This document shows, piece after piece, positions 1 through 43,600 of a stretch of DNA of 64,000 bases. The DNA comes from Macrostomum hystrix (Eukaryota > Animalia > Platyhelminthes). The notes under the pieces were generated by a model. It searched no databases. It was given only the letters and a program-made list of their open reading frames with translations, and had not been told where the DNA came from. The position numbers and the translations under genes are program-made. The stretch's first letter is position 1. Each line of letters starts with the position of its first letter. The stretch spans positions 19,158,001 through 19,222,000 of the forward strand of contig CATNEN010000001.1 in assembly GCA_950097015.1 (NCBI GenBank), written 5' to 3'.

Positions 1-967
1 ACATAATTATTTGTTTTTTCAAAGCAGTATTAAGTAGCCTATACCTTTATTACGATTTTGTTTTTTTCAACTTGAACGCTACGAGTACGTTACGGTTTAC
101 ATACGTAAGTTGCGGGTAATATCGAGCCGATCTTCAAGAAAGGAAAATAATGTGTTTCGTAGCTAATTATTTGGAATACCTTGGTTTTTCGAGAATTATT
201 AAATTAAGATTTAATATACCAGAAAGTCTTACGGTTTCCCTACTTTGTAGCAGAACACGAAAGCTCAGACACTTTTATTAAAAATATATAATATTTGTAG
301 ATGAATTAACTAAATCGATGTTTCAGTAGGTTGAACTCGTGCGATTATACTGCTTTTGCGACAGAATGCAATGACTTTGCATCAATTAGATTTATAAATT
401 GGTCGATTATTTATCATGTTGATTTCTGTCGAAAAGGTTAAATGTTCCGGAAACTTTATGTAACTCTAAACAAAGTAAAACATTTAGATACTGGTGTGAG
501 GCATTGCACTTCGTACCCTACAAAATTTAAACGCTGTTTTGCCGTTTTTATGCAGTATGTGTTTAAAAAAATCTTTTAGCGAACTATTTTCGCTTCAACC
601 TTTCTTTTAAGTTACTTTTATGCTTTAAAAATAATGATTTTTGCCTTGCTGGTCTTTATTTAAAACTTTATGGATTACATGCACTGACAAAAATAAGTAG
701 AATGTTTGGTGCAACGATAAATCGATGACTTTCGTTACGGGTGCTAATAATTTTGACTTTTGCTGAGTTTGTAATATTGACGTTCACCCTTTTGGTTTTT
801 GAAGCTTTGCAGATAAAATTTGGGGACCTGCTGGACCCGTCGTTAGATAATGGAGCGATTCGCTAGCTCGCGATATATTTGCTTGCGTTGCTAATATTGC
901 GTTGCGAATTTGATCGCTACGATGGCCATTGCTTAAAATAAGTAAGCACAAGCTGCAGCCTGCAGCC

Positions 968-1623
968 AAAAAAGTAATAAATTACTAATTAGTAAGCCAA
1001 ATTACTAATAAATAGTAATTCTTCGTTGTATATGGGCAATGTCATGTGGTGAAACTGGTAGCACGTCAGCCTGACAACTGCGGGTCGTTGGTTCGACTCA
1101 TTTTTTATTTAAATTAATGATTATGTTTTGCAGAACAACAAGAAACAAGAACATCATATAAGCCTACTCATTTTTTAATCCGGCTGAGTAAGAAAAAAAG
1201 CGGTTTTACGCTGATTTACATAAATATCAGCACTATACAGTACACTCGAAGCACCAAAGGAATCACATACAGTAGGATAGCCTATATGTTTTGAAAAACT
1301 CTGAAAAAGTATTCGAACGAAAGAATATATACTAATAAATAGTAATTCTTCGTTGTATATGGGCAATGTCAAGTGGTGAAACTGGTAGCACGTCAGCCTG
1401 ACAACTGCGGGTCGTTGGTTCGACTCATTTTTTATTTAAATTAATGATTATATGTTTTGCAGAACAACAAGAACATCATATAAGCCTACTCATTTCTTAA
1501 TCTGGCTAAGTAAGAAAAAAAGCGGTTTTACGCTGATTTACATAAATATCAGCACTATACAGTACACTCGAAGCACCAAAGGAATCACATACAGTAGGAT
1601 AGCCTATATGTTTTGAAAAACTC
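968..1623 (+). repeat. Two ~320-bp tandem units, each with a truncated tRNA-like Pol III cassette
   Basis: GTGGTGAAACTGGTAGCAC...GGTTCGACTCATTTTTT at ~1046-1106 and ~1373-1433; same unit occurs four times at 30299-31578. Confidence 0.8.
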
Positions 1624-1659
1624 TTAAATTAAGAAAACTCTAAAAGAATTTATTTTTCC

Positions 1660-1900
1660 AAACATATCGGCAGCATCCGAACCCCACAGAATTGCCGCAC
1701 AGAACTGCTTTATTCCACGCCAGCCGGAATTATTATTACCCGACGAAATGTCGGTACTCATCTGCAGCTGAGTAGACTGTGTGCACATCAGGGCAAAGCA
1801 GCTTGCCAAGGGCTGCACGAATAGTTCTAGACTAGGTCGGGAGTCGAACCCAGGACCATCTGATCCAGAGTCCGACACCTTACTGACTGAGCTATCCGCC
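1660..1900 (-). mobile_element. tRNA-derived SINE (family A) within the KDZ right arm
   Basis: Minus strand GGCGGATAGCTCAGTCAGTAAGG...GGTTCGACTCCCG (A and B boxes), followed by a CORE-like CCCTTGGCAAGCTGCTTTGCCC...CTCAGCTGCAGATGAGTACC body. The 3' boundary is approximate. Confidence 0.7.
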
Positions 1901-2094
1901 CTCATGGGCAACCTCTCCCCCTCCTCCTTCCCCCCCGTCACCTTCCTATCCCATATCCGAGGCCCACACCAGGAGCGCACCCTGGGCCCATGAGCTGCGA
2001 TCGGCTAGCCCAGCTCACCTCACCATGAGGGCACCCTGGCTAGGCGCATAATAAACGTATGAGCTGGGGCCGGCTAGCCCGCGGCCATAGACTG

Positions 2095-2513
2095 AATTTG
2101 GCCCGCAGAGTGGCGGAGGGGAGTTGGGGTGGCTGTCCTCGGAAAACAAAAAGTGACTCACTTTGAGATGATGCAGCTTCGCTCTGGATTGAGTAGAGAT
2201 GTTCAAAATTGACAGCATTGTTGGAAAACATGTAAAGTGTAAGTGGATCAAATTTGGAGAAAATCTGACAAAGTGGGGCGACGATATGTCGAATTGAGTG
2301 ATTTTTTGACGATTTTTGAGCAGTTTTTTGCACTTTTGAGCAGGAAGGAAATGATTTTTCGGGAATTTGAGTAGCCTATTGCACTCAGCGTAGGTGGTTT
2401 TAGGTATGTGCAAAGTTTCGTGCGATTTGGTTGAGCGGTTTCGGCGTCTATAAAGACAAAAGGTTGCACACACACACACACACAGACAGAGTTTTCACTT
2501 TTATATATATAGA
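2095..2513 (-). mobile_element. 5' portion of non-autonomous Helitron, copy 1
   Basis: Minus strand starts A|TCTATATATATAAAAGTG at 2513 (5'-TC after A), followed by a (TG)n tract; near-identical to 32062-32471. Confidence 0.8.
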
Positions 2514-2752
2514 TACTAGCTTTTTTTGCCCGTTGTTTTTGGGGCAGAAATTTAAAGCAAAGCAGTAAGCAATTCACGTCTCTGTATTAACTTTATAGTG
2601 AAGGTCACCATTTATTTATTTACTGCATTAATGAAAAGTGAAGAGTTTGTTTAAGGGCGTTTTAAGTAAAAAATAAGTGAAAAGTTTGTCCAAACAGCCC
2701 CCTCTTGATTACTTCTTTAGAAACATGTCTCTTAGCCACTCCTCTATACAGT

Positions 2753-3043
2753 CAGTGGCAGATCCAGGAATTTTGTTTTGGGGCGGTCTGTCAGGGGAGC
2801 GCCATGAGAATCACAGAGGGGGTGCCAGCGGCCGAAAAAGGGCGCCAGGAGCCAAGAAAGGGCGCCAGCGGCTGAAAAAGGGCGCCAGGAGCCAAGAAAG
2901 GGCGCCAGCGGCTGAAAAACGGGAGCCAGCGACCGAAAAGGGGCGCCAGTGCTGCGACTGGCGCCCCTGGTGGGGGCATCTTATTCCCATGATTAAAATT
3001 TAGGGGGGCGACTGCCCCCCCGCCCCCCCTAAATCTGCCTCTG
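2753..3043. mobile_element. hAT-type MITE (291 bp) inserted in the Helitron
   Basis: TIRs CAGTGGCAGATCCAGG / CCTAAATCTGCCTCTG; perfect 8-bp TSD TATACAGT at 2745-2752 and 3044-3051; internal AAAGGGCGCCAG repeats. Confidence 0.85.
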
Positions 3044-3207
3044 TATACAGTATGCATGTACACGCGTATACATAAGGAAAATAGCCATGGCATAACAATA
3101 ACAATGTCAAAGAAACAAAATTAAACTGTTAAGCTTAATTGCTTAGAGTTCAGAGTTAGACAGGTCAAGGTCAATTCGTGACTACTTTTCTATTAATTGC
3201 TTGCGAG

Positions 3208-3869
3208 TCACCTCAAGGCCTGGGGATACACCACATTCTTCGTTCTTCCCCTTGGTGCGAAAATGAATAGGCCCGCTGGAGTTCCAACACGGGAGCAGGC
3301 GACATAAAGCTGCCCATGCGAGAAGCAAGGAGTCTCCAGGTTGATGCCAGCTACCTTCAGCGACTGTCCCTGAGCCTTGTTAATAGGCATCGCAAAGCAC
3401 ACTCTCACAGGGAACTGCAGTCGCTTGAACTGAAATGGCAGGTCCGTGGGGATAATTGGAATCCGGGGAACGAACACAGACTCTCCTCTGCCAGATCCAG
3501 TCATTATCGTGGCCTCAATCACGTGTGGGAAGAGCCGCCTGACTATCAGTCTGGTGCCGTTACACAGCCTTGGCGCATTCAGGTTGCGGAGGAGCATAAT
3601 TGGTGCCCCAACTTTCAGCTGCAAGTTGTGCGATGGAGTTCCAGGAGGATCTAGAGAGTTCAGAAACTCAACAGGATACTCCACAGCGGTGTCATCAGTC
3701 AACGTTGTATCAATTGACTTGTAGGTGAAAACTGCACCTGGCAACTCCTGAAGCAGTTGGTAGTTAATTTCGTTGCGGCATCATTTCTAGGACACAGAAT
3801 TGCCCTCTCTGACAGCCAGTCAACGTCAGCATATCGAACCATCAGGTTCGGGTAAACTTTTGCCTTGAG
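3208..3869 (-). pseudogene. C-terminal remnant of Helitron Rep/Hel PIF1-like helicase (5'-truncated, one frameshift near 3760)
   Basis: KVYPNL...WLSERAILCPRN, then in another frame EFLNSL...LKVGAPIMLLRNLN...LCNGTRL...RLQFPVRVCFAMPINKAQGQS...FSHGQLYVACSRV...TKNVVY. Confidence 0.93.
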
Positions 3870-4512
3870 CTTTTTTGACGATTTTTGAGCAGTTTTTTGC
3901 ACTTTTGAGCAGGAAGAAATATCGACCAGAGAGCCCTGCGCACTGGGACGCCACCGCACTCACCGCACTCAGTCTCAGTGCTGCTTGGGGGCCAGTAGAC
4001 AGTCTAGGGGTTTGGGCTGTGTACATTCACGGCTTGAAATACAATGTACAGTCTGGGGCTTCGGCGCCCGGGGAAGGGAGGGGGTGCCTGTAATAAAATT
4101 TGGCCCGCAGCACCTAACGGCCGTGGACTAGCCGGCCTCAGCTCACGGTAAAAATTAGACGGCTAGCCCAGGTCACCTCACCGTGCCATGAGTCCGGCTA
4201 GACGAGTGCAGCTCATGAGCTCCCTGTGGGAACGTGAAGCGTGGGAACCCCATGATGAAGCGTGGTTGGCTGGGAGGGGTTGTTTACGCGAACTTGGGAA
4301 CGAACTAGACGATGGTGCCATACATCCCTATTTGAGCGGGGGACAAAGGGGAACGAGCTGTTTTTCCTCTTCCCACCAAAACTCGAATAGTAAAGAGCTC
4401 GTCGAGTCAAAACTTTAAATCTAATTCTATATCCTATACTAGCTAGAATTGTTAAATAGAAACCTTTTTTATTAGCTCAAATAAGAACTGACAGGTAAGC
4501 CAAGTTTAGGTG

Positions 4513-12860: not shown

Positions 12861-15208
12861 CAGGCAAGCAGGCAGGCAGGTAGGCAGACAGACAGGTAGA
12901 CAGACAGGACAGGATCAGATATCTACCCCATACTTTACTTGTATGGCTTACTAAATCTAGCCCAAATCTACCAAACCCAACCCCAACCCCACCCAATGCA
13001 GCCTCCTCTCCACTCCACCCTAGCTCTCCACCCTCTAAGCTTCTACTCTTCTACTTACACTTCCACTTCTTCCATGTGTTCATGAGCCATGACCCATGTG
13101 CTCAAATCTCTATCTGGCCTACAAGATAAAAATGGTTACCAACCCTGTCCTAATAGGTCAGTGTCCATAGATCTTATATTCCCTAGATAACCTACTCCCC
13201 ATTCAAGCAATGTGAAAAATGTGATCCCACTAAAAAACATTTAATAAACTTGACCATGTCCATGCTCACTCAGAGCTCAAGTTCAGTAGCTATGGGACAT
13301 AGGCAGTTATTTTTGTTTGGATGGCATTAAAAAGATGTAGCAGAAATTTATTTAGTTGCCAATGTTTCCTATCTGTGTGAGCTATGCTCAATAGCAAATA
13401 GATGGTGCCAGAGTATTAAACTCATGTAGCTGCTGTATGAGGAGCTGCGCCACCCAAGTGCCACAGGGCCACAGGGATCCTTTTCCCTTCCTCCAATTCC
13501 TATTCACTCATATTCCTATCCTTCTAGCCTACACAGAATTGTAGTCTATACTTTGACAGCACTTCATATGGCACCACAGAACATTAAATCAGCATTAGCA
13601 CTTGGCAATTTTTTTCAAGTCTCCTTTTGTTTCTTTGCATGGGGCTTAGGTATCTTTACTAGGCATACTCTTGCTATAAAATGCAACATGTAAAATGAAT
13701 ATTTACATAAAATACTGGCAATTTTCTCTCAAGCTACTGAGCTTAAACCAAATTAGAAATACATTGGGTCTAGGGGCACACAAAAGTCCCTAGAGTGCTA
13801 CATCTAGGTAATAAAGATCCATGGATTTGTCAATGATTAGAATAGTTCTAACGTGTTACATGACACTCATAAAACAAAGTCATACACAGTCATAGACAGT
13901 TAGGCCTACAGATGACAGATGTTAGACTTTGGTTCCAATTTTCTTATTTCTTCCCCTCATTTTATTAGATCTTTCTTTTAAAAGCACCATTCTTTTAAAT
14001 CTGTGACCTATGAAGTGGGTGCAAATTGGCAAGTATACCATACTGACCATACCATTTTTGGAATTGGATATACAATAGTCAATTAGTCTACTTTCGATTA
14101 CATATTCCACTAATTATCAATTCAATCATAGAATTAAGCCCTGCGGAATTTTTTAGGGGCAACACTAGTCCTTGATCCTAGGCTCCCAGCTCATAGATCC
14201 CATATCCCAGTAGTTGCTTGGAAATCTTAATAAGAATTTATATTCCTGGGTCCCAATTTCATTTAGAATAATTCATTGTTTCCATACAATTATGACAAGT
14301 TGCCAGCCAATAAGCTAGGCCTATGCATATAGACTAATAGACCCAATATACAGGTTTTTATTCTAATATTAAGACTTGTTAAGATAAGCATAAACTCTGT
14401 AGCCTATGTAAAAAAGGCTTGGATAGCTCACTATTTATAATACACTGAAACTTTATACTCTTAGAGGTCTACATTTTAATACATAAATGGAATGTGGGTG
14501 CATTCATTTAGTGATGATCATAGCAGGTCACATATTAGCTATGAGCCGAGCTGACAAGTTAGGACAGTGGCACTGGGTTGAGAGCAGTAGATTCATATTG
14601 TTTGAGTTAAACACTTTGAATGTGCAAGTCAAACATAAAACAAACAACAGACTCATACTACCTCCCCAAGCCTGTGATTAGCAGTAACACTTGTCCAGCT
14701 CTGCACATTACTTCGTATTGTATTCTGCTAAATTTCAATATTCTCCGCTTTCACATTATGCCTTGCTTTTATACTGTGAAACAAACTATTTATAACTTGA
14801 CGTACCCTTGTTCTCAAAGAAAATGACCGCGAAACGTTAATTTAAATGGTCCCTCATAACATACAGTGCAGAAACCATCTTTCCTAGAAAGCAAGTCGTT
14901 TCATAACGTAACTGTTGTTGCTCGGTCGTATAAAATCTCATTCGAATTATGACTTTCCAATGCTCATTTAAATGGGCCAACTTTTCTACAGAGCATGCTT
15001 TAGGACACATTATTGTTATTGCTTACTTATAAAAAACTTTCGCTCGGGGAAACTGTTAACTTTCATTGCCTCCCAATCATCATTCTAATTTTCGAAATTA
15101 TTCCTTTAATCCTACTTCTAAGTTGGAATTCTATTTTCCTAATTGAAATTTTCTTCTAATTTTAAATTTCATTTAAAGCATTTAATGCATTGTTGCAGAA
15201 TGGATGCT

Positions 15209-17986: not shown

Positions 17987-20418
17987 CAAACGGCAATAGG
18001 TGCCCACAAGCTCGAGCCCCAGTTAAAGTTTATAACTCTGGCTACAATAGTAATAATTACGTAGTCTGTGTGCTGCGAAACAACAACAACAACAACAACA
18101 ATATACGCCAGGTCTCTCCATGGAAACTGGAGAAACTGGGGAAACTGGGAAACTGGCTGCGAAACGCATGCATTTAAGGCCAAGCGTGGCACCAATTGTT
18201 GGTTTCTTGAATTTTCCTAAACGGCAATAGGTGCCCACAAGCTCCAGTTCAAGTTTATAAATCGGGCTACAATAGTAATTAAGTATAGTCTTTGTAGTGC
18301 GAAAATCATGTAGTTGAAGCCAAGCGTGGCACCAATTGTTGGTTTCTTGAATTTTCCTAAACGGCAATAGGTGCCCACAAGCTCCAGTTCAAGTTTATAA
18401 ATCGGGCTACAATAGTAATTAAGTATAGTCTTTGTAGTGCGAAAATCATGTAGTTGAGGCCAAGCGTGGCACCAATTGTTGGTTTCTTGAATTTTCCTAA
18501 ACGGCAATAGGTGCCCACAAGCTCCAGTTCAAGTTTATAAATCTGGCTACAATAGTAATTAAGTATAGTCTTTGTAGTGCGAAAATCATGTAGTTGAGGC
18601 CAAGCGTGGCACTGCAATTGTTGGTTTCTTGAATTTTCCTAAACGGCAATAGGTGCCCACAAGCTCCAGTTCAAGTTTATAAATCGGGTTACAATAGTAA
18701 TTAAGTATAGTCTTTGTAGTGCGAAAATAATGTAGTTGAGGCCAAGCGTGGCACTGCAATTGTTGGTTTCTTGAATTTTCCTAAACGGCAATAGGTGCCC
18801 ACAAGCTCCAGTTCAAGTTTATAAATCGGGCTACAATAGTAATTAAGTATAGTCTTTGTAGTGCGAAAATCATGTAGTTGAGGCCAAGCGTGGCACCAAT
18901 TACTGGTTTCTTGAATTTTCCTAAACGGCAATAGGTGCCCACAAGCTCCAGTTCAAGTTTATAAATCGGGCTACAATAGTAATTAAGTATAGTCTTTGTA
19001 GTGCGAAAATCATGTAGTTGAGGCCAAGCGTGGCACCAATTACTGGTTTCTTGAATTTTACTAAACGGCAATAGGTGCCCACAAGCTCCAGTTCAAGTTT
19101 ATAAATCGGGCTACAATAGTAATTAAGTATAGTCTTTGTAGTGCGAAAATCATGTAGTTGAGGCCAAGCGTGGCACCAATTACTGGTTTCTTGAATTTTC
19201 CTAAACGGCAATAGGTGCCCACAAGCTCCAGTTCAAGTTTATAAATCTGGCTACAATAGTAATTCAGTATAGTCTTTGTAGTGCGAAAATCATGTAGTTG
19301 AGGCCAAGCGTGGCACTGCAATTGTTGGTTTCTTGAATTTTCCTAAACGGCAATAGGTGCCCACAAGCTCCAGTTCAAGTTTATAAATCGGGCTACAATA
19401 GTAATTAAGTATAGTCTTTGTAGTGCGAAAATCATGTAGTTGAGGCCAAGCGTGGCACTGCAATTGTTGGTTTCTTGAATTTTCCTAAACGGCAATAGGT
19501 GCCCACAAGCTCCAGTTCAAGTTTATAAATCTGGCTACAATAGTAATTAAGTATAGTCTTTGTAGTGCGAAAATCATGTAGTTGAGGTCAAGCGTGGCAC
19601 CAATTGTTGGTTTCTTGAATTTTCCTAAACGGCAATAGGTGCCCACAAGCTCCAGTTCAAGTTTATAAATCGGGCTACAATAGTAATTAAGTATAGTCTT
19701 TGTAGTGCGAAAATCATGTAGTTGAGGCCAAGCGTGGCACTGCAATTGTTGGTTTCTTGAATTTTCCTAAACGGCAATAGGTGCCCACAAGCTCCAGTTC
19801 AAGTTTATAAATCTGGCTACAATAGTAATTAAGTATAGTCTTTGTAGTGCGAAAATCATGTAGTTGAGGTCAAGCGTGGCACCAATTGTTGGTTTCTTGA
19901 ATTTTCCTAAACGGCAATAGGTGCCCACAAGCTCCAGTTCAAGTTTATAAATCGGGCTACAATAGTAATTAAGTATAGTCTTTGTAGTGCGAAAATCATG
20001 TAGTTGAGGTCAAGCGTGGCACCAATTGTTGGTTTCTTGAATTTTCCTAAACGGCAATAGGTGCCCACAAGCTCCAGTTCAAGTTTATAAATCGGGCTAC
20101 AATAGTAATTAAGTATAGTCTTTGTAGTGCGAAAATCATGTAGTTGAGGCCAAGCGTGGCACTGCAATTGTTGGTTTCTTGAATTTTCCTAAACGGCAAT
20201 AGGTGCCCACAAGCTCCAGTTCAAGTTTATAAATCGGGTTACAATAGTAATTAAGTATAGTCTTTGTAGTGCGAAAATCATGTAGTTGAGGCCAAGCGTG
20301 GCACTGCAATTGTTGGTTTCTTGAATTTTCCTAAACGGCAATAGGTGCCCACAAGCTCCAGTTCAAGTTTATAAATCTGGCTGCAATAGTAATAATTAAG
20401 TATAGTCTGTGTGATGCG
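17987..20418. repeat. 140/142-bp satellite, ~17 units
   Basis: AAACGGCAATAGGTGCCCACAAGCTC recurs at 18219, 18359, 18499, 18641, 18783, 18923 ... 20333, plus a divergent first unit at 17987. Confidence 0.96.
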
Positions 20419-20520
20419 ACGCCGCAGGCTTACTTATTGACCCCGGATTTCGACAGGGATCGCTTCTACGTCTATCCCAGAATACGGGGAATCAAATCCC
20501 ATCGAAATTCATCAAAGTTA

Positions 20521-24836: not shown

Positions 24837-27284
24837 TTAATCGGAGTCGCTATCAGAAGACTCCGAATCTTCTGAAGCAACCGCTTCATTAGCGCTCTGA
24901 CTCAGTGTGCTGAGGGAGAATTTATTCGCAAGAAGATATTTTACAGCATCAGTCACGCTTTTACTTGCAACATCTTCAAGCAGTCTTCTAAACAATTCCC
25001 GAAATTGAGCGGCTAAGCCCGGCTGATTCGCTAAGTCATCACAGAGGCTCTGCAAATTAACCTGAAGGTCAACCCACTCATCTGAAATAATATGCGCTTC
25101 TTCTTTTAGGCGTTTATATTTGTTACTGACGTCTATAGCCCGCTGACGAAATCGGATGGAAAGGTCGGTTCCAGACAAATGTTCATATTTCGCACTACGC
25201 GGTTTTTTATATTCATCGAAAGAAGCTCTGTCTTCAATTGGAAGACGAGCGTAGAGTTTTTTCATGTCGGATGCATAACTTTTAACCTTTCGCAAGCACA
25301 TTCTGGTTTGACTTTGGCCAACTGACTTACCAACCTGTTTACTCCAATGATCTCTGTGCACTGCAAGAGCGCGTAGCTCACATAGGATATCATCTTCCGA
25401 GTTGTGTACAGCTACTCGGAGGGAATCTTCATACCATTGGGAGCCTAAATCCAAAATTTCATCCTCAGAGATGACCAGACTGTCATTTCGGACCCCCGAG
25501 TGCTGCAAAATCGCAGACTGGCTTTGTAGCTCTTTTAGTTCACTTAGAATGCTTTTTCCCGCACCTACCATAAGCTTAATACGTTGTGTAAACCACCCAG
25601 AAGCGCTAAGAAGCTGTTGTGCATTAAAGAAGTATAGAATATGCGCCATGTATTGTGCTCGTCGGTCTTTCCGCATGTACTTTAAAAACTTACCGAACGG
25701 CCTGAGTTGAGACCAGGCTCGCTCAGTATTCTCTCCATCGCATAGACCTGCGCCTGGAGTAACGCGAACAGAAAACTTTTTTTGACAACTGGGCAGGTGA
25801 CCAAGAGCATGAAAAGCGTTTATTGCACAGCTACTCGCTTGAATGTTGGCACCAGACTTCGCAATAGCGGATTTAACCCGGCTGGATACGCGACAGCCTG
25901 TGAATTGGGATAAAGAGTAAGTCATGTTGTCATATAACTGTACACAAGCAACAGTATTTCATAGATTGTATGCATTTTATAAAATAATAATAAACTTACC
26001 CACGTCATATACGACAAGTAATTCCTTAGACACTTTGACGTTTCGCAGAAAGTGTTCAAGGCACTGTTCCAGGTAGCAAAACTTTTCTCCACCAGTTGTG
26101 ATATTTGAGCCACACAAAAGGCGATTGTGACGACAGAATAATCCAAAGAAACCCGTGACATCATGTCTCTGCTCACGGCTTAATGGTTCATGAGCACCGG
26201 CCTTCCAATTAGGACAATTCTGTTCCTCTGCTCGATTTTTTGGCACATCCGCTTTAATATCTACATAGACAAGCGGCGTAGGTAATGGACGACCATCTGA
26301 TGGTATTTCCAGTTGTGTACGCCCCTTGGCTTTAAAGCGCTGCCAACCAAATAGAGCATCTGCACAGACAACAGTTTTGCGCACAGCGTGATTATCTGGA
26401 CAGAGAAGACAATTATTTGGCCATTTTGCTGAGGCCATTTGCAGGTGGCGAAACCGCAGCAAAACATCATGTCGTTGAATGCGTTGATAAGTGCTTTTTA
26501 CAAGAGCCAAATTATATGTACCTTGTCCCAGAGTTGGCCCAATGAGCAGTGTACTGACCGCTCTGTGAACAGGCAACTGCCCAGTCATACACAAACTGTC
26601 TAGCAGGGACAAAAAGGTAAAAGAAAAGAATGCATACCCATCTGAATCAGGCTTTGACCCTTCGCAACAAGGGAAGAACCCTTGAGAAAGGAGTGCACCA
26701 ATAAGATCACAGGAGTCGCAGGTAATAAAAATGACCTTTACGCTTCCAGCCAGATCTATAAGGTCAACTTTTGTAGCCGCACAGACATTCAGATTCAATT
26801 TACTAGAAGCGCAGCAAAACATTTCAAAAGCATCGTGAGTAGCATCCAGTTCCTGAAACATTAGACTCTCCTTATTCCATATGAGAAACTTGTGGGCTGA
26901 AAACTTTTTATGCGTCTCATTCTTACAGCTGGCACATAAGCTAAGTCGACAAGTAACACATCGATATACACCTTCGTGCTCATAGCAAGAGGAACACAGA
27001 TTTAAGAGAAAATGCTTCTCGTAACTACCTCTGTATTTCTCAGCAAAGCTGTCAAAATCTACCCATTCAACATCTTCTACTGTAGGAGCAAAAGACTCAG
27101 GCATACCGACATCATTCTCGGTGCTAGCTTCCACTGGAACAGGAGTAGTTTCAGACACAGGACGCCGAGATGTTGAGCCTCGATTTCGGCCGCTAATGAT
27201 TGTCTTAATCTTTCTGGGTCGCCCACGACAGCCAGTTTGCAGTGTAGCTTTGACAACACGCTTCAGTTCGATGCCGCGATACAT
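24837..27284 (-). CDS. CxC (CxC2/CxC3-like) cysteine cluster + KDZ transposase, two exons (27284-26000, 25897-24837), 781 aa
   Basis: A 102-bp GTAAGT...TTCACAG intron joins YDVG|CR in frame. KDZ motifs: VCADALFGWQR, GFFGLFCRH, GEKFCY, YDVGC, FHALGHLPSCQ, GAGLCDGENTERAWSQL. N-terminal CxxC...YRCVTC...LCASC...H...H..W cluster and LLSQGFFP. Confidence 0.92.
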
Positions 27285-30298: not shown

Positions 30299-31578
30299 AA
30301 AAAGTATTCGAACGAAAGAATATATACTAATAAATAGTAATTCTTCGTTGTATTTGGCCAATGTCATGTGGTGAAACTGGTAGCACGTCAGCCTGATAAC
30401 TGCGGGTCGTTGGTTCGACTCATTTTTTATTTAAATTAATGATTATATGTTTTGCAGAACAACAAAAACATCATATAAGCCTACTCATTTCTTAATCTGG
30501 CTGAGTAAGAAAAAAAGCGGTTTTACGCTGATTTACATAAATATCAGCACTATACAGTACACTCGAAGCACCAAAGGAATCACATACAGTAGGATAGCCT
30601 ATATGTTTTGAAAAACTCTGAAAAAGTATTCGAACGAAAGAATATACTTATAAATAGTAATTCTTCGTTGTAAACTGGCAATGTCAAGTGGTTTAACTGG
30701 TAGCACGTCAGCCTGACAACTGCGGGTCGTTGGTTCGACTCATTTTTTATTTAAATTAATGATTATATGTTTTGCAGAACAACAAGAACATCATATAAGC
30801 CTACTCATTTCTTAATCTGGCTGAGTAAGAAAAAAAGCGGTTTTACGCTGATTTACATAAATATCAGCACTATACAGTACACTCGAAGCACCAAAGGAAT
30901 CACATACAGTAGGATAGCCTATATGTTTTGAAAAACTCTGAAAAAGTATTCGAACGAAAGAATATACTTATAAATAGTAATTCTTCGTTGTAAACTGGCA
31001 ATGTCAAGTGGTTTAACTGGTAGCACGTCAGCCTGACAACTGCGGGTCGTTGGTTCGACTCATTTTTTATTTAAATTAATGATTATATGTTTTGCAGAAC
31101 AACAAGAACATCATATAAGCCTACTCATTTCTTAATCCGGCTGAGTAAGAAAAAAAGCGGTTTTACGCTGATTTACATCAATATCAGCACTATACAGTAC
31201 ACTCGAAGCACCAAAGGAATCACATACAGTAGAATAGCCTATATGTTTTGAAAAACTCTGAAAAAGTATTCGAACGAAAGAATATACTAATAAATAGTAA
31301 TTCTTCGTTGTATATGGGCAATGTCAAGTGGTGAAACTGGTAGCACGTCAGCCTGATAACTGCGGGTCGTTGGTTCGACTCATTTTTTATTTAAATTAAT
31401 GATTATATGTTTTGCAGAACAACAAGAACATCATATAAGCCTACTCATTTCTTAATCCGGCTGAGTAAGAAAAAAAGCGGTTTTACGCTGATTTACATCA
31501 ATATCAGCACTATACAGTACATTCGAAGCACCAAAGGAATCACATACAGTAGGATAGCCTATATGTTTTGAAAAACTC
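30299..31578 (+). repeat. Four 320-bp tandem units, each with a truncated tRNA-like Pol III cassette
   Basis: AAAGTATTCGAACGAAAG at ~30301, 30623, 30943, 31263; each unit has an A box TGGT(GA/TT)AACTGG, a B box GGTTCGACTC and a T6 run. Confidence 0.85.
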
Positions 31579-31614
31579 TTAAATTAAGAAAACTCTTAAA
31601 GAATTTATTTTTCC

Positions 31615-32061: not shown

Positions 32062-32471
32062 CCCGCAGAGTGGCGGAGGGGAGTTGGGGTGGCTGTCCTC
32101 GGAAAACAAAAAGTGACTCACTTTGAGATGATGCAGCTTTGCTCTGGATTGAGTAGAGATGTTCAAAATTGACAGCATTGTTGGAAAACATGTAAAGTGT
32201 AAGTGGATCAAATTTGGAGAAAATCTGACAAAGTGGGGCGACGATATGTCGAATTGAGTGATTTTTTGACGATTTTTGAGCAGTTTTTTGCACTTTTGAG
32301 CAGGAAGGAAATGATTTTTCGGGAATTTGAGTAGCCTATTGCACTCAGCGTAGGTGGTTTTAGGTATGTGCAAAGTTTGGTGCGATTTGGTTGAGCGGTT
32401 TCGGCGTCTATAAAGACAAAAGGTTGCACACACACACACACAGACAGAGTTTTTACTTTTATATATATAGA
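32062..32471 (-). mobile_element. 5' portion of non-autonomous Helitron, copy 2
   Basis: Minus strand A|TCTATATATATAAAAGTA at 32471; similarity to copy 1 stops exactly at the TC. Confidence 0.82.
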
Positions 32472-32690
32472 TTACAGAAGAGAAACTGCTAAACTCTAAT
32501 CTCGGGGACGCCTAATTGACTGGAAACGTGTACAGTTGCCTAGTTACCGCTCGTGCATATATAAACGCTACCATTTGAGAAGCTAAAACGGCCCATTTAA
32601 GGACCGCCATTTAAAAATATCTTTTAAATTGAGTCAACAGCAGTGAAATTATCAAATAGCCCAAGAACAACTTTGGTGGCATTCAGTAGA
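32472..32690 (+). repeat. End of a dispersed repeat; a diverged inverted copy lies at 59790-60178
   Basis: AACTGCTAAACTCTAATCTC(G/A)GGGACGCCTAATTGAC, AAACGGCCCATTT(A/T)AGGACCGCCA and AACAACTTTGGTGGCATT blocks are shared. Confidence 0.7.
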
Positions 32691-34804
32691 ATTAAGTAAA
32701 AATAAGTAAAGCCCTAGTACAATTTCTTCATGTTTTCGTTTATCATTCACTCACTGGATTCCCTAGATCACAGCCCTTTATGGGAAGAATGCATTACGAA
32801 AACGAAAACCTAGAAATAGTTGATCGATCAAAAAATTGTTATAACTTTTTTATTGCCTTAGTAATTTTTATGAGTGAGGTGTCTTTTAACTCAGAAAAGC
32901 AAGATCTAGAACATAAAAAACATAGAAATAAAAATTCTAATTTCTCACTGGGAGCCCCTAACTTACATTAAACAAAATATTTTATAGGCCTACTTAGTCA
33001 CGTTTCTGAGCAGAATGTAATATTAATAGTACTGTTTAGGTGCTATAAGTTTTGTGGAAAGCAGCACTCGAGCAATAAACTTACCGAAACAGTTCCACAA
33101 AAATGATAATATAAATAGCTGGGTGCATGAGTTCTAAGAGCAAGATTTACTTTACCTCCCTTAACCAGAAAGCTCGAGCGAAAATAGGTTCGATCGATAT
33201 TTATCTATCTAGCAACGAAGATTTCTATTGGCGGAGAAATAAACTTTTTTTAGCTTCGTCCAACTTCATCGACGTTCATACGTTTATGTTTACTTAAAGT
33301 AGAAATATACCTGTTTTAAAATGCGAATTTCTGACTACAATATAACTTTTGTTTTGAAGGATAATCCGTTTTACAATTAAAAACGGATTAAACAATTAAA
33401 AATGTTTGATAGACAAGAGATAAAACGATAGATAAAAAAGTACTTTCAATTTAATTTTTTTATCGATTTAAAATATTAGAGTTGAAAATATCAGTTACAA
33501 TTAGTAAGTAAAAAACATGTCTGCTCTAACTACGGAAAAATTAAAGCGGCATTAATATAGAGAGGACATAACTATCCTAGTGGATAAGAAAGTAAAAAGG
33601 ATAAATTTGTGAGTACAAAGTCACAAATGCGCATGGTTTATTCGTGAATTTCCGATTTCCGTTTTCTTGCAGTTTCTAGCTTGGTTATGTTGCGTCGCTT
33701 ATCACTCTATTCTCTCTCTGTGGTATACTACTTTCGGCGGTCTCTCTTTTGTTCCCCCAATATTTCTCGCTTGGATACTGTTGGCCCTGAAAAGGGCCGT
33801 TTTAGCATACGTCTCCACGACATACTCTGTATAGGTAGCGTAGCGTCTTACTCAGGCATGAACGGTTTTCTCAATAAAGTCTCTCTAATTTTTCACCAAG
33901 TCTACAGGATGTACAGGACTGGAGTGTCAGCCTCGACCTCAAGCAGAAAATAACGAACACTTGAACACGAATTCTTAAGTTTTATAGTATTAAGAATTCA
34001 TTTGGATTTTCATCGAATCGCAATAATTATCATAATATTTTTTCAATGAATTTTTTTAATTATCACTGAATCGCAATAGTATTTAAAATACTTATAATTC
34101 ATGGAGCGCTATCAGAGTTGGTTGTTTCTATCGTAATTTTCGTCCGCTGATACCGCTGGTCCGCTGTCCGTATGTGACTTTGCCTGAGAAAAAAGAAAAG
34201 CGACAAACATTTCAAGGTAATTTACATAAACGAAAGTAAAATTGTTTGTCATTTTTAATATATTTCAGAATTTTATCGGGGCCAGATTGTTACATTGGAC
34301 TTGATTTATTGTATAGCTTTGCTTGTAGCATAATTGATTGATGGAACGTTATTCCACAGATAGACTTAAGGAATTTAGTATAGCCGTATAAGGTGGATTG
34401 ATTTGCTAAAACTACAATGAGACGACATATTAAGCGGGCTCAGACAGACCAACATAGAGCTTTAGTATACTGTCGTGGATACGATATAATGCAAAGAAAA
34501 ATACAACGAGAGACAATATTGTCCTTCTGGCAGTAAAAATACATTTTCCAGGGAGTTTCAACATTTACAAAGTAACCACAGCCTATTTTCCATTGTCCTG
34601 TCTTCCAAAACAAAAGAAAGCGTTCACGTAGGAACTCTTATCGATCATCTAGAAGCAAGCTTTTGGTATGTTTGATCGAAAATCGGCAATTATAGAGAAT
34701 GCAGATAATACACTACAAATCTATCCTAAGAAAGTAAATATAAATTAATACCAAGGCAAAATATACTAGGCAAAAAATATACCACATACTTTCACACTAA
34801 AACT

Positions 34805-37603
34805 ACAGATACAGTCACTCTAAACACACAGATACTGGCACTCTAAACACACAGATACTGTCACTCTAAACACACAGATACAGTCACTCCAAACACACAG
34901 ATACAGTCACTCTAAACACACAGATACAGTCACTCTAAACACACAGATACAGTCACTCCAAACACACAGATACTGTCACTCTAAACACACAGATACAGTC
35001 ACTCTAAACACACAGATACTGGCACTCCAAACACACAGATACAGTCACTCTAAACACACAGATACTGGCACTCTAAACACACAGATACTGTCACTCCAAA
35101 CACACAGATACAGTCACTCTAAACACACAGATACAGTCACTCTAAACACACAGATACTGGCACTCTAAACACACAGATACTGTCACTCTAAACACACAGA
35201 TACAGTCACTCCAAACACACAGATACAGTCACTCTAAACACACAGATACTGGCACTCTAAACACACAGATACTGTCACTCTAAACACACAGATACAGTCA
35301 CTCCAAACACACAGATACAGTCACTCTAAACACACAGATACTGTCACTCTAAACACACAGATACAGTCACTCCAAACACACAGATACTGTCACTCTAAAC
35401 ACACAGATACTGGCACTCCAAACACACAATTACTGTCACTCTAAACACACAGATACTGTCACTCAAAACACACAGATACTGTCACTCTAAACACACAGAT
35501 ACCGTCACTCTAAACACACAGATACTGGCACTCTAAACACACAGATACGGTCACTCTAAACACACAGATACAGTCACTCTATAAACACACAGATACAGTC
35601 ACTCTAAACACACAGATACAGTCACTCTAAACACACAGATACTGGCACTCCAAACACACAATTACTGTCACTCTAAACACACAGATACTGGCACTCTAAA
35701 CACACAGATACAGTCACTCTAAACACACAGATACAGTCACTCTAAACACACAGATACAGTCACTCTAAACACACAGATACAGTCACTCCAAACACACAGA
35801 TACAGTCACTCCAAACACACAGATACAGTCACTCCAAACACACAGATACTGGCACTCCAAACACACAGATACTGGCACTCCAAACACACAGATACAGTCA
35901 CTCTAAACACACAGATACTGTCACTCTAAACACACAGATACAGTCACTCCAAACACACAGATACAGTCACTCTAAACACACAGATACAGTCACTCTAAAC
36001 ACACAGATACAGTCACTCTAAACACACAGATACTGGCACTCCAAACACACAATTACTGTCACTCTAAACACACAGATACTGGCACTCCAAACACACAATT
36101 ACTGTCACTCTAAACACACAGATACTGGCACTCTAAACACACAGATACAGTCACTCTAAACACACAGATACAGTCACTCTAAACACACAGATACAGTCAC
36201 TCTAAACACACAGATACAGTCACTCCAAACACACAGATACAGTCACTCCAAACACACAGATACAGTCACTCCAAACACACAGATACTGGCACTCCAAACA
36301 CACAGATACTGGCACTCCAAACACACAGATACAGTCACTCTAAACACACAGATACTGTCACTCTAAACACACAGATACAGTCACTCCAAACACACAGATA
36401 CAGTCACTCTAAACACACAGATACAGTCACTCTAAACACACAGATACAGTCACTCTAAACACACAGATACAGTCACTCCAAACACACAGATACAGTCACT
36501 CCAAACACACAGATACAGTCACTCCAAACACACAGATACAGTCACTCCAAACACACAGATACAGTCACTCCAAACACACAGATACAGTCACTCCAAACAC
36601 ACAGATACAGTCACTCCAAACACACAGATACAGTCACTCCAAACACACAGATACAGTCACTCTAAACACACAGATACAGTCACTCTAAACACACAGATAC
36701 TGGCACTCCAAACACACAGATACTGGCACTCCAAACACACAGATACTGTCACTCCAAACACACAGATACTGGCACTCCAAACACACAGATACAGTCACTC
36801 TAAACACACAGATACAGTCACTCTAAACACACAGATACTGGCACTCTAAACACACAGATACTGTCACTCTAAACACACAGATACAGTCACTCCAAACACA
36901 CAGATACAGTCACTCTAAACACACAGATACTGGCACTCTAAACACACAGATACTGTCACTCTAAACACACAGATACAGTCACTCCAAACACACAGATACA
37001 GTCACTCTAAACACACAGATACTGTCACTCTAAACACACAGATACAGTCACTCCAAACACACAGATACTGTCACTCCAAACACACAGATACAGTCACTCT
37101 AAACACACAGATACAGTCACTCTAAACACACAGATACAGTCACTCCAAACACACAGATACAGTCACTCCAAACACACAGATACAGTCACTCCAAACACAC
37201 AGATACAGTCACTCCAAACACACAGATACAGTCACTCCAAACACACAGATACAGTCACTCCAAACACACAGATACAGTCACTCCAAACACACAGATACAG
37301 TCACTCCAAACACACAGATACAGTCACTCTAAACACACAGATACAGTCACTCTAAACACACAGATACTGGCACTCCAAACACACAGATACTGGCACTCCA
37401 AACACACAGATACTGTCACTCCAAACACACAGATACTGGCACTCCAAACACACAGATACTGGCACTCCAAACACACAGATACAGTCACTCTAAACACACA
37501 GATACAGTCACTCTAAACACACAATTACTGTCACTCTAAACACACAGATACTGGCACTCCAAACGCACAGATACTGGCACTCCAAACGCACAGATACTGT
37601 CAT
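34805..37603. repeat. 23-bp minisatellite, ~120 copies (CACTCTAAACACACAGATACAGT)
   Basis: Direct inspection; abuts the stop codon of the ankyrin gene. Confidence 0.97.
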
Positions 37604-40600
37604 CGCAGCACTCCGCTAACAGCCAGTCGGGTCCCAGCTGGCGGCAGCATCATCGTGGTGCGCGAACGAAGTAGCAATGGTCTGCTACCGCCGCCGCCGC
37701 TGCTGCCGCTGGCACCCAGTGCGGGCAACTCGTGGGCCAGCGTGAGGCTCAGGTTGGCAGCAATTACATCAAATGTGGATGATTTTGCCGGGTTGGGCTT
37801 CACTCGGCGCACCAGGCCACGGATCGAGTCCCGCGTTCGCTTTAGCTGGTAGGCTTGAATTCTGGCGCACACCTGATCGCTGAAGTAGCCGCAGGTCAGC
37901 CAGTCGTCAAATTCTGAGATGTAATCGAATGCAGCTAGACCATTCTGGGCGCGGCATTTCGTATCGGCGCCCCTTTCTATGAGCAGGCTGGCTGAGAGCT
38001 GGTTGCCGCTCCTACAGAAAAGCGAAGGTCAGACAGCGTTTGGATTGTCAATTTGAACTCCCCCTACATCAGCTCACCTGCAGGCGTAGAACAGCGGAGT
38101 GGCCAGGTCTCTGGCGCGAGCGTCGGGGCTGCCGCCCTTGTCCAACAGCAGCAGCATCAGGTCGGAGCCTTCAGCTAAGCCAGCCGCCAAGTGCAGAGCA
38201 GTGGCGCCATCGGGCGGAAACTGCGCACCTGGATCGGCTCCGCACCTGAAATTGGAGGTATTACATTTCTTTCTATATTAACCCAGGGGAAGCGATTCGT
38301 GTCTTTAAATAAGACACTTGATTTTCCGTTGCTCCAGTTCACACAGCTGTAAACAGGCCTGCGGGCAATGGCTCATCATTTGGTGACACTGGAACCGCAG
38401 CCAGTGAGGAGGCAATTATGACCATTTCAAAGACTCCTGAGCACACACGCACGCAGATGTACACAGGTGTGTACATCTGCCCTGATTTTCTCATCGTCAG
38501 GCAGTGTGCACTCTCACTCTGCCTTGGAGCTAGGACAAGCCCCCAAGCCTTCTCTCCGCGGCTGCGCTCCAAATAAATGCGGCCTCGCCGCGAAATCGAA
38601 CTTAGGGACCGTGATGCGAGAGGCAAACGCGTTAACCGCTCTACAACCGACCCCCCGCTGTAAACAGCATTCTGTAAACAGCAAACAGCAAACAGAATCT
38701 GAATTCCGGTGATGGTGGTGGCCCCCGGTCCATGGACTGAACAAATTTACATGGCTTTTGAAAACGCCAGGTAATCAGAACCTGTCTAACAGGAATCCCA
38801 AGGTCAGGAAGCGTCGCGAGATTAACAGCTCGCCAGACACCAGCCGGTAGAGCATCCGCGACGCTTCGTCAGACTTGAGTTCGAATCCTTTGCCGAGAAG
38901 CCAATCGGCGCACTCCACGAATCCGCCAGTCAGGGCCAGACACACCAGGCTAGGCGGGTGCTGGGGCCCCTCCTGGCCGAGGCTGCGCAGGATGGCGCCA
39001 CCGCCGTTGGAGGCATCTCGGCTAAGCAGCAGGTTGATGACGTCAGTGCGGCCCTGTAGCGCTGCGCAGTGAATGGGCATTAAGTCCTGAGGGAGGCAAG
39101 CGGGCACTAATTTCACGCAATGTCACTTCACTTCAGAGCCCCAACTCCACTCATGTATTGTCTCAGACTCCACTCATGTCTTGTCCCAGACTCCACTCAT
39201 GTCTTGTCCCAGACTCCACTCATGTCTTGTCCCAGACTCCACTCATGTCTTGTCCCAGACTCCACTCATGTCTTATCCCAGACTCCACTCATTTCTTGTC
39301 CCAGACTCCACTCATGCCTTGCTCCACACTTCTCATCCCAGCTCTCTGACTCAGAGTCCACAGCGGCACAAGGTGCGACAGAAACGGACAACGTAGAAGG
39401 TAGAAGCGGACAACGGCAGGTTGGTGCATCAGATGCCCGGAAATTTTGAAATTTTGAATTTGTTAAAGTGAACTCTAAAGAATTTCGACAGTCAAAGTTG
39501 TTCACAACGAGGCTGTTGATTGAGTGTAATGAAAAGTGCTAAAGGAAATTTCACGAAGCAAAGCAATTGAACTAAAGTACTTGTAGTTTGTGCAGGAAAA
39601 AGAAATTTGAAGATGTATAACTATTTTGTGACAGTCACAAGAATCAAAATTTTTTATGTAAACAATTTATGAAACTGTGTTGCACATTTTTACCTTTTAA
39701 CTTTGTGACCTGAAAAGGAAAATTCTGAAAAAATGACGATGTATCACACACTGAATTATATAAGATATTAATCTGACTCAACTGAGGTCTCAGCCTGACT
39801 CAACTGAGGTCTCAGCTTGACTCAACTGAGGTCTCAGCCTGACTCAACTGAGGTCTCAGCCTGACTCAACTGAGGTCTCAGCCTGACTCAACTGAGGTCT
39901 CAGCTTGACTCAACTGAGGTCTCAGCCTGACTCAACTGAGGTCTCAGCCTGACTCAACTGAGGTCTCAGCCTGACTCAACTGAGGTCTCAGCCTGACTCA
40001 ACTGAGGTCTCAGCCTGACTCAACTGAGGTCTCAGCCTGACTCAACTGAGGTCTCAGCCTGACTCAACTGAGGTCTCAGCCTGACTCAACTGAGGTCTCA
40101 GCCTGACTCAACTGAGGTCTCAGCCTGACTCAACTGAGGTCTCAGCCTGACTCAACTGAGGTCTCAGCCTGACTCAACTGAGGTCTCAGCCTGACTTAAC
40201 TGAGGTCTCAACCTGACTCAACTGACCTTATCGTTCCTGCTAACAGGGCTGGCGTCGTTGTCCAAGAGGAAGCGGATAAGGTCCAGTTGAGACGACTTTC
40301 CCTCCTCGCCGAAGCACTTGACATGCAGCGCCTGGTTTCCCTCTCTGTCTTTCAGATGGACGTCAGCGCCGGCCTCAAGCAGGATGCGAGCGCCCACGGT
40401 GCTGCCGACTCGATGAAGCACACCGGCGCCTTTATAGTCGCGAATTGTGACATCGATTTTTATTTTGAGCAGCCGACGCAACAGCAGCAGGTGGTCAAAA
40501 TAGGCCGCTGTGTGTAGCAGAGTGCTGCCGTTCAAGCACCTGCACGTTTGGATTGCGATTGTGACGTTTGGCGAATTCTGCGACATTCTATGGCATTCTT

Positions 40601-43600
40601 GGTGCACTTCTCACCTGCTCTGCAAGCTGACCAGCTCGTGGCGTTTCGTCACGTGATCCTCGATGAGGTCAGCCAGGTGACGCATATCGCCCGAGACAGC
40701 TAAGGGCACGGCAGTGGAATAGTACTGGTAGTGCTGCATCAGGCTGCGGCGGAGCTCGTCGCTTTTGGACGCCTCCAGGGCTGTCACCTTCTGGATATTC
40801 CTGGCGTGAATGTCGCAGCCCCACTCGATGAGCAGCTAAGGATGAGGGAGACACAGGAATACAATAGTCAAGTAAAATATTTCCTGAGCTTCTGCACCGT
40901 TTCAAACTGGTCTAGACTCACCTGGCAAACCTTCCTGTTCCCTGACTCCACAGCGGAGAACAGCGGCGTGCATTTGTGCACATTCCTAGCGTCAATGTCG
41001 GCGAAGTGTTCCAGCAGCAGCAGGGCCACCCTCAGCTGGCCGTAACGACAGGCGTAGTGCAGAGCCGTGTTCTGGCTGCCCGGCTCCCGGTAGTTGATGA
41101 AGTCAGGCACAAAGCTGAAGAAGCTTAGCAGCTTCTGCGTAGCTGGGCTGTTGCCCTCCTTGGCGTGCTTCAGCATGGCGCTCTGCCAGATGTCCAGAGT
41201 GCCGGGAAACACCTGGTAGAGCACCGACTCGCCTACGCCAATCAGGCTGTTCTTGCTCACGCACTCGACGTAGATGTCCCATTGCGGATATTCGGTCGGG
41301 TCCAATAGGATGGAGTCTTTGTTTGGCTGGCGAAGCAGCTGCCGCACTGTCACTAATTATATAAGAACAGGTTGACTTCAATGTCTAACAGGTTGACTTC
41401 AATGTCTAACAGGTTGACTTCAATGTCTGTCTAACAGGTTGACTTCAATGTCTAACAGGTTGACTTCAATGTCTAACAGGTTGACTTCAATGTCTAACAG
41501 GTTGACTTCAATGTCTAACAGGTTGACTTCAATGTCTAACAGGTTGACTTCAATGTCTGTCTAACAGGTTGACTTCAATGTCTAACAGGTTGACTTCAAT
41601 GTCTGTCTAACAGGTTGACTTCAATGTCTAACAGGTTGACTTCAATGTCTAACAGGTTGACTTCAATGTCTAACAGGTTGACTTCAATGTCTAACAGGTT
41701 GACTTCAATGTCTAACAGGTTGACTTCAATGTCTGTCTAACAGGTTGACTTCAATGTCTAACAGGTTGACTTCAATGTCTAACAGGTTGACTTCAATGTC
41801 TAACAGGTTTACTTCAATTTCTAACAGGTTTACTTCAATGTCTAACAGGTTTACTTCAATTTCTAACAGGTTTACTTCAATGTCTTCAATGTGCAACATG
41901 TATATTTTAGTAAGTCAGATATTTATTTGAAATTATATGAGAGGATTTAATGTACTTTTGGGCTAAAATTGGTGCAAAACTTAAAGTGTTTTTCTACTCA
42001 GTTTACAAACTATTTCTGTCCTCAAGCTAAGCAGGCAAACTCACCTTCACTCCTTCTCGTGAAGTCGTCGTGAAATTCGCCAGTCTTTTTTGAGTGCAGC
42101 ACAATCCGCCTCTGCTCCACAATGAGCTCGGGGTCAAGCAGCTTACAAAAGGCGGCGCCATTCGAAAGACTCTAAGGGGAAGTGTAAAAAACCTCCGTCA
42201 TTTAGCTTCGAGCCTAATTTGACAGCGGAGCCGTAAAAGCGTCGGACTCTCGCGCAAGAAGGTACCGGGTTCGAATCCACCGTGTTTAGTCACTACTTTG
42301 GAGGACTGAAAATTACATGCGAGCTTAACATATTCTCACCAGGTTGATCATGAGTGACAGGCACATCTGGTTGAGGGTCATGTCTCGCGGAGCCTGCACG
42401 ATTTCGAAGCGATCTGTCAGTTTGTCTCGTATTTTGTCCTGCATCTGAATTGACGGGTTACGGGTTAGGACAAGCAAGCTTGAAAATTTGTCTCATTTCT
42501 TGTATAAGCAAAACAAATAACTGAAATTGAAGGAAATGTGCACTTCATATGAGAGCGGACCGACTTGACTGGGATAGTTGAGACAGGGGAGAGATGAGAC
42601 AGGGGAGAGATGAGACACGGGAGAGATGAGACACGGGAGAGATGAGACACGGGAGAGATGATACAGGGGAGAGATGAGACACGGGAGAGATGAGACACGG
42701 GAGAGATGAGGCACGGGAGAGATGAGACACGGGAGAGATGAGACACGGGAGAGATGAGACACGGGAGAGATGAGACACGGGAGAGATGAGACACGGGAGA
42801 GATGAGACACGGGAGAGATGAGACACGGGAGAGATGAGACACTGGAGAGATGAGATGCGGGAGAGATGAGACACGGGAGAGATGAGACGCGGGAGAGATG
42901 AGACACGGGAGAGATGAGATGCGGGAGAGATGAGACAGGGGAGAGATGAGACACGGGAGAGATGAGACAGTGAAGAGATGAGACACGGGAGAGATGAGAC
43001 ACGGGAGAGATGATACAGGGGAGAGATGAGACAGGGGAGAGATGAGACACGGGAGAGATGAGACACGGGAGAGATGAGACACGGGAGAGATAAGTCACGG
43101 GAGAGGTGATACACGGGAGAGATGAGACTCTGGAGAGATAAGTCACGGGAGAGATGAGACACGGGAGAGATAAGTCACGGGAGAGATGAGACACGGGAGA
43201 GATGAGACACGGGAGAGATGAGACACGGGAGAGATGAGACAGGGGAGAGATGAGACACGGGAGAGATGAGACACTGGAGAGATGAGACACGGGAGAGATG
43301 AGACTCGGGAGAGATGAGACGCGGGAGAGAGTTCTTGGAAGCGCCCAGAAGGATCTAGGAGCTTGAGGGTTTCAGCAGGCCCTGGGCTCGGGTTTGCAGG
43401 TCCCTGGTCCAGCCCAAGAGGTTGCTGAAGTTAAATAGTTTAGCATACATACCTACTTACCAGGCAACTTAGTAGCAAGTATAGAACATGAAAAGAGCCT
43501 TTATTCACCTCCTTCAGTGTGTCCTGCGCAAAGCTGATGTTATGTCGGCACTCGGTCACATCAAACCGAGCTTCGATTTCCGCTCTCTCTGGAAAAGTTG

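Follow-up and report, generated by a model that had tools for sequence, protein, structure and literature searches.

Introduction

The closest described systems are the KDZ transposons (Kyakuja-Dileera-Zisupton), among them the fungal Kyakuja and Zisupton elements and KDZ1-3 of Cryptococcus, which have the same transposase domain as the element reported here, 5'-CA...TG-3' termini and target-site duplications of 7 or 8 bp (PMC12730594; 10.1101/2025.05.19.654958). Published duplication lengths are 7 bp for Kyakuja, 8 bp for Zisupton, Dileera and KDZ1, and a variable 4-8 bp for KDZ2/3 (PMC12730594; 10.1101/2025.05.19.654958). KDZ elements and the lengths of their duplications are known, as is the fact that they are large and carry cargo genes. 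No report of a target preference for any KDZ element was found in the literature searched. The family described here shares the large size of known KDZ elements and differs from them in its animal (flatworm) host, a length of 28-32 kb and an orientation-biased preference for repeat segments.

Regional or site-specific integration is common in retroelements and rare in eukaryotic DDE transposons. Tethered regional targeting is exemplified by Ty1 and Ty3 near Pol III genes, Ty5 with Sir4, Tf1 at promoters and TRE5-A, and by the homing of P elements. Like these, the KDZ family shows insertions clustered in a window near a feature with no consensus in the duplications, and its landing beside its own end resembles P-element homing via transposase-binding sites. 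The tethered systems are mostly retroelements with known tethers, however, while a KDZ tether is something that we only infer. Tx1-type non-LTR retrotransposons insert into other transposons via a sequence-specific endonuclease and target-primed reverse transcription; the likeness is that another transposon family is the habitual target, the difference that the KDZ family moves by DDE cut-and-paste transposition and is loose in its position. The Dada DNA transposons are target-specific for U6/U1 snRNA and tRNA genes (Kojima & Jurka 2013, PMC3706591). They resemble the present family as eukaryotic DDE transposons with 6-7 bp duplications and a conserved multicopy sequence as landing place (PMC3706591). 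Yet Dada inserts at one fixed nucleotide of its target, whereas the KDZ family hits other transposons instead of RNA genes, at positions spread over 26-212 bp and in both orientations.

Results

The host repeat and the two KDZ junctions

The analysed stretch of DNA (the window) comprises 64,000 nucleotides of Macrostomum hystrix. Two KDZ copies lie here in a host repeat that is Helitron-like, about 2.0 kb long and on the minus strand. Its parts in the window are as follows.

2095-2513, minus strand: first 419 nt of Helitron unit H1, with the 5' TC at 2513-2512 after a host A; interrupted by KDZ copy 1
2514-2515: TA, a spacer that separates the 5' TC of H1 from the 3' CTAG of H2
2516-4110, minus strand: 3' 1,595 nt of Helitron unit H2, with a putative short GC hairpin ahead of the terminal CTAG (2519-2516)
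3208-3744, minus strand: remnant of a Pif1-type helicase ORF (Pfam PF21530 Pif1_2B_dom, E 1.4e-19, 70 bits at a cut-off of 23.9)
32062-32472, minus strand: first 411 nt of Helitron unit H2, with the 5' TC at 32472-32471

H2 thus spans 32472 back to 2516 and is split by KDZ copy 2; H1 is 99% identical to the 5' part of H2 and to other genomic copies. The termini are those of a Helitron: A/TC at 2514/2513 and 32473/32472, and CTAG/T at 2519-2515. It is precisely at 2513-2522 that read contigs of other copies diverge, their flanks having ...A/CTAGC at the end. H1 and H2 are separate units in a head-to-tail tandem joined as CTAG-TA-TC, and the DNA past their two 5' ends differs and is unrelated. 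Helitron arrays with a period of about 2.2 kb, the spacing at which empty sites recur elsewhere, are common in the genome. A 5-bp GC stem (TGCCC...GGGCA), spotted by eye, precedes CTAG by about 8 nt. Besides the Pif1 2B remnant no Rep (HUH) domain was found in the 2-kb unit, which therefore appears to be a non-autonomous derivative. The Helitron also contains a direct repeat of 51 bp (98% identical; 2302-2352 and 3871-3920); because contigs of other copies diverge at 3871 and 3915-3917, Helitron variants differ between the 51-bp repeats.

The KDZ copies and their immediate flanks were located at the following positions.

1-2094, plus strand: right-hand 2.1 kb of KDZ copy 1, with the exact family terminus GGCCATAGACTG at 2083-2094
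2095-2101: AATTTGG, flank of copy 1 and presumed duplicated target of 7 bp (or 8, if the following C is counted), lacking a left counterpart
4104-4110: CCCGCAG, left target-site duplication of copy 2, read directly
4111-32061, plus strand: KDZ copy 2, 27,951 bp, termini CACCTAACGG...CCATAGACTG, with intact 7-bp duplications CCCGCAG
32062-32068: CCCGCAG, right target-site duplication of copy 2, read directly

An earlier note on this DNA had reported two KDZ copies at the same Helitron site with an offset of 7 bp, and direct reading of the junctions bears this out. Copy 1 ends ...GGCCATAGACTG (2094), followed by AATTTGG (2095-2101), CCCGCAG (2102-2108) and AGTGG. At the left junction of copy 2, ...TAATAAAATTTGG CCCGCAG (4104-4110) leads into the element start CACCTAACGG (4111); at its right junction, ...GGCCATAGACTG (32061) is followed by CCCGCAG (32062-32068) and AGTGG. 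The right end of copy 1 faces AATTTGGCCCGCAG and lies exactly 7 bp to the left of the copy 2 insertion point in the same host sequence. The empty site that the note had reconstructed, AAAATTTGGCCCGCAGAGTGGCGGAGG, exists: with up to 3 mismatches allowed, the genome has 362 occurrences of it and 0 of the reversed control. The uninterrupted joint 4096->2095 is also present in read-derived contigs of three public runs; its depth in run X1 was 483 versus about 30 for the KDZ body (about 16x).

The KDZ family

Copy 2 inserted recently: its duplications are intact, and its ends are 99.9-100% identical to copies on contigs C26, C25, C7 and C1. Genome-wide, the family terminates at precisely the same bases in varied flanks, at 21 left ends and at 28 right ends, with one degenerate end besides; flanks were read for 21/21 left and 27/29 right ends, the right ends on C30 and C41 being left out. 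The termini CACCTAACGGCC...GGCCATAGACTG follow the 5'-CA...TG-3' pattern of KDZ elements, with an imperfect inverted repeat. At 28-32 kb the elements of this family are giant.

24837-27284, minus strand: KDZ transposase gene of at least 2 exons, 27284-26000 and 25938-24837, separated by a GT...AG intron of about 61 nt

The identity of the element, proposed in the earlier note, was confirmed by matches to Pfam PF18758 on both exons, which were searched separately and unjoined: 38.6 bits on 25977-27284 and 59.9 bits on 24837-25925, both on the minus strand, at a cut-off of 26.6. The two halves of the profile are complementary, with positions 3-125 on one ORF and 125-214 on the next. The transposase of the family is probably intact. 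As to an N-terminal zinc-chelating (CxC-type) domain, residues 95-133 of the first exon gave B-box-like zinc-finger matches with E values of 2.8e-4 and 1.6e-3, under the cut-offs. A Pfam search of 18 ORFs of copy 2 (at least 90 aa) matched the transposase alone and found no SET or other cargo domain.

Eleven copies could be paired with both flanks. Their target-site duplications are all perfect, with a length of 7 bp in six pairs and 8 bp in five; the two lengths characteristic of KDZ elements are thus mixed within one family. None was longer, and a duplication of 14 bp was found in 0/11 pairs. The duplicated sequences yielded no consensus. Two further pairs have no duplication (C1:2.82/2.85M and C1:14.68/14.69M), and the right end of the former sits in the hot segment of the Helitron described below.

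Units of about 320 bp are tandemly arrayed in the right part of the element (1000-1628 and 30299-31583), 2 of them in copy 1 and 4 in copy 2, with a tRNA-like stretch in every unit. ARAGORN called no tRNA in this tRNA-like module. The stretch 1800-1905 beside the array is probably a tRNA-derived SINE, because it has more than 200 other genomic matches at 98-100%. Long minisatellite arrays, one of them with a 140-bp period over 2.3 kb inside copy 2, occupy 34783-37602 (23-bp period, 2.8 kb), 18158-20419, 39773-40225 and 41366-41885 of the window, and further arrays lie at 42571-43330, 45402-45920, 51019-53449 and 61126-62693.

Genome-wide distribution of insertions

Every readable junction was mapped on a reference Helitron composed of window positions 2515-4110 and 32069-32471. 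Eight independent insertions were obtained, at reference positions 1393, 1469-75, 1476-82 (inverted), 1579, 1580-87, 1583, 1590-96 and 1598-1604 (inverted). All eight fall inside 212 of 1,999 bp, a clustering with P about 1.5e-7, and five of them inside a 26-bp core. The hot segment lies about 400-610 nt from the 5' end of the Helitron, in H2 at the following positions.

about 3908-4110 plus 32062-32077: KDZ hot segment in H2

With its 362 target copies the 212-bp segment makes up 0.035% of the genome and received 8 of about 33 events, an enrichment of x696 (P=3e-21); for the 26-bp core the enrichment is x3500. The genome-wide count that the earlier note had proposed thus singles out the hot segment, with positions spread over all 212 bp. 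The note had also held that copies in unrelated flanks would speak against targeting. About 15 of 33 events do lie in flanks outside this segment and the two further hot segments described below, yet the preference for the Helitron stands. A single fixed position like that of Dada was not seen: there are eight positions, two of them inverted. The preference is regional, not site-specific.

Two further segments, unrelated to the Helitron, were identified that are equally hot. The second is in a repeat of about 16 copies (about 10 uninterrupted), where some 245 bp took up six insertions, with only 4 bp between two of these. The third is the element's own right subterminal 71 bp (70-140 bp from the end), where four nested copies have landed. 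Together the three segments take 18 of about 33 events, 16/18 of them in one orientation.

The hot segments were compared in several ways. They have no motif in common, local alignments being no better than shuffles; k-mers shared by all three were not above the null, and hairpins or cruciforms at the hot spots were not indicated by fold energies (z -0.75 to +0.8). Insertion flanks average 56% GC versus a background of 44-47%, and G4/C4 runs occur in 53% of flanks versus 11-19%. Though real, this excess of GC and G-runs is modest, and the figures are raised by the many flanks that come from one and the same Helitron.

In one copy of the second hot repeat (L027; G000:C1:18687066-18690166) a Helitron of the same family is inserted (A/TC) 191 bp downstream of the KDZ site, and the homologue L031 is without it. 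This suggests that the rare second repeat attracts both element types.

KDZ ends are concentrated on contig C1, which holds 20/29 right ends (69%; about 70-80% of ends) and represents 12.5% of the genome (27.6 of 220 Mb; P=3e-12). They lie mostly at 2.8-3.7 Mb and 12.5-19.5 Mb, a concentration consistent with local hopping. Given the hot segment and the concentration on C1, two insertions 7 bp apart in adjacent units are to be expected.

C1 also contains a nested and duplicated cluster at 3.45-3.65 Mb (C1:3457916-3458187, 3606516 and 3613635; L029, L010 and L011). Its tandem units of 7.1 kb each consist of a deleted KDZ derivative and about 560 bp of spacer, and in one stretch of 270 bp three KDZ right ends are stacked.

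Could the pattern have arisen with no targeting at all, by random insertions that survived only in harmless repeats and so accumulated in Helitrons and other transposons? Most retained copies are in repeats, and C1 may be a repeat-rich, permissive chromosome. Selection, however, cannot put 8/8 Helitron insertions into 212 of 2,000 bp, at the probability given above, or five of them within 26 bp. Likewise, six insertions in a repeat of about 16 copies, four insertions in 71 bp of the element's own end and the 16:2 orientation bias would be left unexplained. Clustering within a neutral repeat of 2 kb is beyond what retention bias can explain by itself, and we regard purely random insertion as highly improbable. 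The data show an orientation-biased regional target preference.

Structure of copy 1

The window contains the right-hand part of copy 1 only, and the element was followed upstream of it.

G000:C1:19088105 (window -69895) to 2094, plus strand: whole of KDZ copy 1, about 72 kb with five nested insertions
G000:C1:19102456-19148845 (window -55544 to -1156; loci L060-L066): nested inserts and their neighbours
Nested insert (a), 7.1 kb: between 560-bp direct repeats that are 99.3% alike, of which copy 2 keeps one copy
Nested insert (b), 9.2 kb: holds a perfect 1,890-bp inverted repeat
Nested insert (c), 4.8 kb
Nested insert (d), 14.7 kb
Nested insert (e), 9.1 kb: probable LTR element of very recent origin, its 665-bp terminal direct repeats being identical

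Copy 1 is a single element; apart from the clean nested insertions, it is collinear with the whole of copy 2 (coordinates 1-27951). A reading as two truncated elements was rejected, since the overlap at 13572-14008 proved to be the 560-bp direct repeats that flank the 7.1-kb insert.

At its left end (C1:19088105) copy 1 adjoins ...GGGGCGCATAGTAAATG (...GCATAGTAAATG), part of an unrelated 25-copy repeat. The left flank ...GTAAATG has no match to the right flank, hence no duplication was found, and the left part of the Helitron is absent from the 70 kb upstream of the window and from 1.5 kb beyond the left end of copy 1. The earlier note had proposed to choose between independent insertion and duplication of a whole unit by reading this junction; neither of the two predicted sequences is present. 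With its left end in an unrelated repeat and no matching duplication, copy 1 seems to have been rearranged after insertion. Its original left junction might have been lost by recombination with another copy in the same orientation; alternatively, the flank might have been deleted in an aberrant one-ended event. Insertion into H1 is accordingly read from the right junction, a true product of integration that falls within the hot core.

The mismatched flanks of copy 1 also raise the question of whether the 72-kb element, or the tandem layout of Helitron and KDZ copies, is a mis-join of near-identical repeats in the assembly. Young repeats are dense in the region, and short-read contigs are unable to span it. 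On the other hand, each junction sequence is a unique combination that occurs once in the assembly, and copy 1 is collinear with copy 2 except for clean nested insertions, one of them with the identical 665-bp LTR-like repeats. An assembly artefact thus has very little probability, and the conclusion on the hot spot is independent of this locus.

Independent insertions or a duplicated unit

The earlier note had left two explanations for the 7-bp offset: two independent insertions by a transposon that targets another transposon, or one insertion with a 14-bp duplication, followed by duplication of the KDZ and Helitron unit, e.g. by unequal exchange in the Helitron array, and loss of 7 bp at the right junction of copy 2. 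The duplication scenario has in its favour that the left junction of copy 2 and the right junction of copy 1 would make a perfect 14-bp pair AATTTGGCCCGCAG, and unequal exchange is plausible in Helitron arrays. Yet duplications are 7 or 8 bp long in 11/11 paired copies, and copy 1 is not flanked by Helitron on its left. Moreover, with three other independent insertions at most 11 bp from copies 1 and 2, a special event is unneeded.

Substitution divergence between copies 1 and 2 is 0.65-1.3%, and that of their Helitron flanks 0.73% (Fisher p=0.78); the 95-96% identity given by BLAST reflects mainly indels. Element and flanks are thus equally low in divergence, as a duplicated unit would be. 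Because the element is no more divergent than its flanks, divergence does not separate the two explanations and still allows a shared local origin.

The distinction comes from derived characters. Copies 1 and 2 each share derived indels or substitutions with dispersed copies and not with each other. In its last 470 bp copy 1 has a 13-bp deletion in common with copies at C1:14.07M, 15.67M and 16.07M, and copy 2 has 3-4 characters (G>A, C>T, poly-C length) in common with seven near-identical copies on C26, C25, C7 and C1. These diagnostic characters were read in place of a right-end tree, the last 470 bp containing too few substitutions to resolve one. A tree of left ends (1.8 kb) placed copy 1 within a clade with 99/100 support, apart from copy 2. 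A clade of copies 1 and 2 was rejected by the AU test on left ends (p=4e-5), a result for the left end of copy 1, an end that, should copy 1 be recombinant, may derive from another original element.

The earlier note had also seen meaning in an offset of exactly one duplication length. The duplication is either 7 or 8 bp and the other offsets in the core are 1, 3 and 8 bp, so the 7 bp are a coincidence within a tight cluster. Without a 14-bp duplication in 11 pairs, and with the two copies in different sublineages that have members elsewhere, duplication of a whole unit is unlikely rather than impossible, and we give it only a slight chance. Of the first explanation, the independence of the insertions and the preference for the Helitron (8 in 212 bp, 5 in 26 bp) hold; its restriction to the Helitron does not, as there are two other hot segments. 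Taken together, the window very probably shows two independent KDZ integrations in adjacent head-to-tail Helitron units, made by a family with a strong, orientation-biased regional preference.

Discussion

How the element finds these segments can be narrowed to some degree. Direct recognition of a cleavage site is disfavoured by duplications that have no consensus and by three hot segments that have no common motif. A tether fits better, because positions scatter, the cleavage site lacks a consensus and copies land near the element's own end. The transpososome could be guided by a DNA-binding part of the transposase, by a cargo protein or by a feature of the host or its chromatin. As no feature common to the three hot segments was found, tethered target capture is purely what we infer from the pattern of insertions. 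A directional targeting system that is tethered to a few repeat segments, and whose one-ended events at the hot spot make the duplication-free copies, is a tentative proposal, which we consider possible and somewhat less than probable.

For annotation the locus carries a warning, in that segmental duplication need not be the cause where near-identical junctions lie side by side in a repeat array. As to biology, this young family of about 30 copies shows a several-hundred- to ten-thousand-fold preference for three short, unrelated segments, which makes these KDZ elements a concrete system in which to seek a tether. If tethered targeting were true, a eukaryotic cut-and-paste element would possess a 'safe-harbour' mechanism of natural origin. 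That elements of 30 kb persist in a compact genome of 220 Mb may be explained by their insertion into other transposons and into themselves.
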